From Perna viridis (lineage: Eukaryota): DNA of 64,000 bases. The notes beneath the pieces are model-generated. The model searched no databases. It saw only the letters and a program-made list of their open reading frames with translations, and had not been told where the DNA came from. Location: positions 36,048,103-36,112,102 of the forward strand of contig CM074519.1 of the NCBI GenBank assembly GCA_037379345.1, in the 5' to 3' direction. Below, piece after piece: positions 48,415 to 48,854 of this stretch (the stretch's first letter is position 1; every line of letters begins with the position of its first letter). The position numbers were made by a program, and so were the translations under genes.

Positions 48415-48854
48415 ATATCCTTTTAAAAATATCATAGAAATAATATTAGCAGGCATATGATGACTGTAACATTCCTATTGGTTTAATGACAGAATTGTTT
48501 ACCTTTATAGATTTTCCATAGATTCTATGAATTTTATCAAATTACAATCTACAGATAATGGTCCTCTGCATAGTATCTACATTGTGAATGACAAAATTCA
48601 AGATTATATTTTAAAAAAAAGAACCAAAATTACAGATTCTCATTAAATAGCATAAAGAGGGCTGTTGTATTTTATAATTTTTATTAAGCAGTACTGATGT
48701 ACATAGTTCACAGAACAAATGTATAGATTTACAGTATGTGGAAATTGGGTCATTTATTTCATAGAAGAAAGGTCCTATATTTCTAGAAGAACAAATTTAT
48801 GTAGCTGTAAAGTTATAAATGACTTAAGATATTTGTCCTTGACTCCTTTTGCAC
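48415..48854 (+). other. U12-type (minor spliceosome) AT-AC intron, 440 nt
   Basis: 5' end ATATCCTTTT, branch site TCCTTGAC at 48836-48843, 3' end gcAC. Removal restores [13 protein letters not shown]. Confidence 0.95.

Follow-up and report, generated by a model that had tools for sequence, protein, structure and literature searches.

A probably ancient U12-type AT-AC intron within the E732 codon of the single Perna viridis SERCA gene

In the single SERCA gene of Perna viridis, the codon for E732 is interrupted by a phase 1 intron of 440 nt (48415..48854, + strand; positions refer to the window, i.e., the whole 64,000-nucleotide stretch of DNA that was analysed) that begins with AT and ends with AC. 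We read it as a constitutive U12-dependent AT-AC intron and as an inherited relic predating the cnidarian-bilaterian split, with a probability of about 0.9. The initial annotation, made from the letters alone, had proposed a U12-type AT-AC intron at these coordinates on the basis of its motifs and the missing GT donor, with flanking exons of 94 + 127 nt, and sequence and RNA now agree with it on each point. The SERCA intron is a well-supported addition to a well-known intron class and not a new mechanism. With it, an essential Ca2+ pump joins the ion-transport genes that carry a minor intron, apparently only outside vertebrates and the examined arthropods, which is probably why it is unreported in the literature searched.

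The SERCA gene and the split codon

The window contains one large SERCA gene on the + strand, in which residues 46-1021 of a Mytilus-type SERCA are collinear with 24 exon blocks between 2201 and 54561. The closest named proteins are Mytilus SERCAs (~86-87% identity over the aligned exons), as befits a bivalve, probably a pteriomorph, other than Mytilus, and the DKTGT phosphorylation motif lies inside exon 42079-42209. Compared with solved structures, the two exons that flank the AT-AC intron match SERCA1/2 with E = 4e-13 and 6e-19 (31/31 and 39/41 identical residues), and Na,K-ATPase, SPCA and PMCA give far lower scores for both. By sequence the gene is thus a SERCA (P2A-type Ca2+-ATPase, ATP2A), predicted to transport Ca2+ into the ER, and it is single-copy in the P. 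viridis genome.

The upstream exon (48321..48414, + strand, 94 nt) encodes T701-S731 and the first base (G) of the E732 codon, with 100% identity to SERCA 701-731, and is delimited by the RNA joints 47883^48321 and 48414^48855. It is preceded by ...ttttacag| and closes with ...gcatcag, with no GT at or near its 3' boundary. The downstream exon (48855..48981, + strand, 127 nt; placed by sequence, alignment and the RNA joint 48981^49229) opens with AG ATG GTG and completes the E732 codon with two bases and then encodes M733-V773, followed by two bases of the codon after that. As these exons align to rabbit SERCA1a 701-731 and 733-773, respectively, the codon G|AG, which the intron splits in phase 1, is that of E732, in accordance with the earlier reading of the junction as S-E732-M. 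Of the candidate junctions that were compared, only 48414^48855 restores ...KTASEMVLADD..., the protein that had been expected. E732 helps to coordinate K+ in the P domain, at a site to which L711, K712 and A714 also contribute ligands (PMC7313052). Since there is no expectation that introns are placed according to what a residue does, we draw no connection between the intron and this role of E732, and its position within that codon is most likely incidental.

The preceding intron (47884..48320, + strand, 437 nt), defined by the RNA joint 47883^48321 and by exon alignment, is an ordinary GT-AG intron whose position just before TGDG is common to vertebrate-type fragments, Lingula, Capitella and Ptychodera. 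After refinement with a script that allowed joins of at most 8 codons per side, the 21 junctions that could be resolved among the 22 others examined in the SERCA gene, all but the one after exon 50468-50599, were GT-AG with U2-like donors. A candidate for a second U12 intron, with the donor GTATCAAGGG at 33949, was rejected for its misfit to the consensus. In the Na,K-ATPase and PMCA loci of the P. viridis genome (L008 and L009), the homologous codon is read straight through, with no intron.

Splice signals and RNA evidence

The 5' splice site ATATCCTTTT (48415..48424, + strand), a predicted binding site for U11 and U6atac, matches the U12 consensus ATATCCTT, i.e., (A/G)TATCCTT at +1 to +8 (PMC2831892, PMC3291851), at 8/8 positions. 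The branch-point sequence TCCTTGAC (48836..48843, + strand), with the presumed branch A at 48842 and 12 nt from the last intron base, within the ~10-15 nt typical of U12-type introns, agrees with the U12 branch-site consensus TCCTTAAC (PMC2831892) at 7/8 positions. The intron ends as TCCTTGAC-tccttttgc-AC, its terminal AC (48853..48854, + strand) being placed by both sequence and the RNA joint, and a purine/AT mix with no long polypyrimidine tract lies upstream of the branch site. Taken alone, these motifs are unenriched in the 64-kb window: RTATCCTTT has 3 occurrences over both strands (2.15 expected), and the branch/AC pattern also has 3 (1.43 expected). The case is made by where exactly the motifs lie, together with the RNA reads. 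On the + strand, the 5' motif and the branch/AC motif occur once each, both exactly where protein homology needs the junction. No RNA gene was found inside the intron, the sole match lying elsewhere (E = 0.95).

The predicted joint 48414^48855 (AT..AC) occurs in 94 reads of X21 and 170 of X22, two raw, stranded RNA-seq runs that one study obtained from the same species, and it is also present in transcript contigs of X1 and X3, which come from other studies. Three neighbouring GT-AG joints have 112/179, 77/152 and 116/206 reads in X21/X22, and the RNA places transcription on the + strand. The reads alone leave a one-base ambiguity, such that the cut could be TA..CA, which is resolved by the U12 consensus. 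Depth at 48440-48775 is zero in both runs and exon bins reach ~90-300, so that retention is below ~1% in those two samples. In the sampled tissues, the AT-AC intron is spliced as completely as the adjacent major introns. Two RNA variants in the same gene, 49283 A > G and 49406 T > C, occur in ~59% of the reads in X21 and ~100% in X22, and look like alleles rather than editing.

Removal by the minor spliceosome

The P. viridis genome (723 Mb) encodes U11, U12, U4atac and U6atac, all above the Rfam cut-offs (91, 124, 96 and 96 bits, respectively). Their pairing segments are intact at the U11 5' end (UAAAAGGG), in U6atac (AAAGGAGAGA) and in U12 (GAGUAAGGAAAA), and the 5' site can pair with the U11 and U6atac of the same genome. 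Aligned with the U12 segment, TCCTTGAC forms a G-U wobble pair and leaves its A bulged out. From these signals we infer that the intron is removed by the minor spliceosome, along the steps of the established minor-splicing mechanism: U11 would pair with the 5' splice site and U12 with the branch site, bulging the A 12 nt upstream of AC, after which U4atac/U6atac.U5 would take the place of U11 and catalysis would join G|AG to restore the codon for E732.

AT-AC termini do not by themselves specify the machinery, as there is a small group of U2-type introns with the same termini, including some in sodium-channel genes (PMC2831892), and the major (U2) spliceosome could in principle process the SERCA intron as well. 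Those introns, however, have a G at +5 and U2-like 5' sites (PMC2831892), whereas the SERCA intron has a perfect U12 site from +1 to +10 with a C at +5. Together with the near-consensus branch site so close to the 3' end, the lack of a long polypyrimidine tract and the U12 signals retained by the orthologous introns in L010, L011 and L017 (see below), this makes removal by the major spliceosome extremely improbable.

The same site in other animals

The state of the site in other animals was assessed with a query consisting of the stop-free ORF extending from the upstream intron across exon 48321-48414 and into the 5' splice site, and the best 120 matches were examined. In unspliced contigs, G|ATATCCTT translates as D-I-L and G|GTATCCTT as G-I-L, and the residues that follow ...VAK(S/T)A(S/A) report the state of the site. 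Among these 120, ~10 continue as ...AS-DIL and ~25 as ...AS-GIL, many show G and then one of K, E, N or T, as translated from GTAAG, GTGAG and the like, which corresponds to a U2-type donor in the same phase, and the remaining matches read EMVLADDNF uninterrupted. Named SERCAs were found by word searches started from database proteins, the 82-aa exon query having given only short fragments.

For three loci the intron was read in DNA. In the hemichordate Ptychodera flava (L017, GCA_041260155.1), ATATCCTTTA...TCCTTTAC-tctttagc-AC interrupts the same codon in the same phase. This intron resembles that of P. viridis in its AT-AC termini, its 5' site (ATATCCTTT), its length (434 vs 440 nt) and the presence of an upstream intron before TGDG; compared at the splice signals, it differs in the branch site, which is TCCTTTAC instead of TCCTTGAC and lies 11 nt from the end. 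A mollusc-like metagenome contig (L010) carries ATATCCTTTC...CCCTTGAC...AC (3571 nt), and a cnidarian-like one (L011) carries GTATCCTTTT...TCCTTGAC...AG (893 nt), which is a U12-type intron of the GT-AG subtype. In a tree for which its exon translations were placed on the coordinates of a reference, L011 falls inside the animals, next to corals (support 93/89), and it probably represents another cnidarian.

For corals, unionid mussels and gastropods, a putative intron is indicated by translated read-through in named proteins, which come from two species of unionid mussels, two lineages of gastropods and one coral. In addition, GIL fragments with EISAM...IGVAM...KSAS match the SERCA clusters of the stony corals Porites, Pocillopora, Orbicella, Oculina and Stylophora. 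The cnidarian intron (L011, the coral fragments and Stylophora PFX25610.1) has the same site and phase as that of P. viridis, with the 5' site GTATCCTT and a (T)CCTTGAC branch 11-12 nt from the end, but its termini are GT-AG, indicating a subtype switch, and no intron precedes TGDG. In Stylophora, the intron appears from the protein to be only 66 nt long and in frame.

In DNA, the E732-codon intron is absent from Lingula, Capitella, Branchiostoma, the millipede Chamberlinius and the spider Stegodyphus. The amphioxus Branchiostoma belcheri (L016, at ~42370) has an intron at another position, a few codons further 5', within ...KKADIG|IAMGSG. In three vertebrate-type fragments (P0174, P0179 and P0188), a single 221-nt exon extends uninterrupted from Q|TGDG to GEVV-W*, and such fragments (SSNVGEVV) have 97% identity to bird and frog SERCAs. 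Vertebrate ATP2A thus shares the start (ag|ACN GGN GAT = TGDG) and the end (GEVV, TG|GTAA) of the region with P. viridis, in contrast to which it appears as one exon that continues across the E732 codon, as the initial annotation had stated for the combined 94 + 127 nt. These ORF fragments are the basis for the apparent absence of the intron in vertebrates.

A third state of the site is found in tunicate-like fragments (P0241, P0262 and P0256; 94% identity to a Molgula SERCA), which have a U2-type donor there, and in ~25 'Q|TGDG...IGVAM...AS-G[KENT]' fragments with a U2-type GT donor at the same phase 1 site. This suggests that the intron was converted from U12- to U2-type in several lineages.

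Age and evolution of the intron

The simplest reading of this distribution is that the U12 intron was present before the cnidarian-bilaterian split. The ancestral intron would have stayed AT-AC in molluscs and the hemichordate, and would have adopted the GT-AG subtype in cnidarians; many lineages, vertebrates among them, would later have lost it or turned it into a U2-type intron. A pathway from AT-AC U12 via GT-AG U12 to U2 or loss has been described by Lin et al. (PMC2831892), and one site in one gene here displays all of its proposed states (AT-AC U12, GT-AG U12, U2-type and loss). The initial annotation had left the choice between an ancestral U12 intron lost in vertebrates and a lineage-specific one, and had proposed mapping the position across phyla; that mapping favours the first option over the second.

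Independent gain in molluscs, with the matches in other phyla being parallel insertions at a favoured site, would fit the absence of the intron from the brachiopod and the annelid examined, which leaves molluscs as the only lophotrochozoans with it so far. It is nevertheless very improbable, as codon, phase and U12 type are identical in the hemichordate (in DNA), the cnidarian-type sequences and molluscs, and as the U2-type intron at the E732 site of the tunicate-like fragments fits the known path from AT-AC via GT-AG U12 to U2 or loss (PMC2831892). We therefore retain the ancestral origin.

Comparison with known minor introns

The closest known counterparts of the SERCA intron are the U12 AT-AC introns of voltage-gated Na+ and Ca2+ channel genes, with which it shares the 5' site ATATCCTT and a branch site like TCCTTAAC near the AC end, as well as the deep conservation, an ion-transporter host and, as a rule, a single such intron per gene (PMC2831892, PMC3291851, PMC8767276). 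Unlike these, its host is SERCA, which is nowhere described as a minor-intron gene in the literature searched, and it is missing from the vertebrate-type fragments, the millipede and the spider, that is, from the best-studied animals. In a full-text literature search, no paper connected SERCA/ATP2A with U12 or minor introns, and a survey of U12 introns in insects (PMC3291851) mentions no ATPase. Two 'AT-AC' literature matches were rejected, since they arose from the gene name At-ACA8.

Intron retention and SERCA supply

Read-through of the intron translates as DILLKIS*, confirming the premature stop that had been foreseen, which would come 8 codons in. A regulatory bottleneck is conceivable, in which slow or conditional minor splicing would set the amount of SERCA through retention, the premature stop and mRNA decay. 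Minor-intron control of ion-channel expression has been reported in mammalian cardiomyocytes (PMC8767276), and the SERCA intron has long been preserved as U12-type across several phyla. Run X1 could also be read in this way, since it includes a contig of the AT-AC intron (48438-48824) with a depth of 9, compared to an exon depth of 23 and to 4 and 6.5 for two neighbouring introns. However, X1 also contains contigs of ordinary major introns, one of them equally deep (9.2), and it therefore most likely holds pre-mRNA or DNA; its low-depth intronic contigs in the window are found at 47903-48102, 48438-48824, 49442-49661 and 49678-49831. The X1 contig of the AT-AC intron has four differences from the window, pointing to another individual.

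In both stranded runs, the empty intron and a joint count like that of the neighbours speak against such a bottleneck, and they lend no support to the suggestion in the initial annotation that minor-spliceosome activity could limit the output of the ER Ca2+ pump. Many lineages, moreover, have lost or converted the intron with no visible consequence. We consider the bottleneck unlikely, and constitutive splicing remains the preferred reading. Somewhat more doubtful still is the evolutionary extension of the idea, that slowly evolving lineages have preserved the U12 intron of SERCA for > 600 million years as a means of tuning the supply of ER Ca2+ pumps through minor-spliceosome activity. If it were true, SERCA output would fall under the post-transcriptional control that also governs voltage-gated Na+ and Ca2+ channels, and lineages lacking the intron, including vertebrates, would have replaced such control by other means.

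Errors in public annotation

Automated annotation had been expected to go wrong at this junction, and it does in at least six deposited SERCA proteins (P0392, P0401, P0408, P0454, P0553 and P0523), from Potamilus, Sinanodonta, Batillaria, Bulinus, Mytilus galloprovincialis and Stylophora. The mis-spliced models either lose P-domain residues or carry translated intron. In the proteins of Potamilus streckersoni, whose gene spans 106 kb, and of Sinanodonta woodiana, the sequence becomes SAS-DILLIIK/DILSIIK and 12 P-domain residues are missing, and one Mytilus galloprovincialis model reads VAK-CLQ-MVL. Those of Batillaria attramentaria and Bulinus truncatus include 27 and 37 residues of translated intron, respectively, which start with DIL and end with ..AQ (= ..GCAC|AG), and the Bulinus truncatus insert contains I-L-D, consistent with TCCTTGAC. 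In Stylophora pistillata PFX25610.1, GILLYLLVHFTIYEFVPLDLML is inserted between S and E; this appears to be the expected product of a fully retained, in-frame 66-nt GT-AG U12 intron, in which P-L-D would fit CCTTGAC. The RefSeq model of Stylophora pistillata is correct at the junction, and so are the RefSeq proteins of many molluscs, such that the junction is already implicitly annotated. The peptides 'AS-DIL' and 'AS-GIL' can serve as a cheap flag for annotation errors at this junction.

Other features of the SERCA gene

Downstream of the AT-AC intron, 50468-50599 and 51169-51315 are tandem alternative exons that encode SERCA residues ~871-914. The loose ends of RNA reads behind 50099 form a mixture whose consensus differs between X21 and X22 (agreement 0.8), as is expected if both alternative exons are used in different proportions. 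The intron after exon 12691-12829 contains at least seven near-identical 31-aa ORFs with a spacing of 96 nt (12973-13737), which are copies of the end of that exon together with its GTAAGT donor. Another intron harbours a tandem array at 40027-40973 with a period of ~138 nt and the repeated ORF VLKLLSPLEYGLFSLSIEVIVSFGIWSIFFEY.
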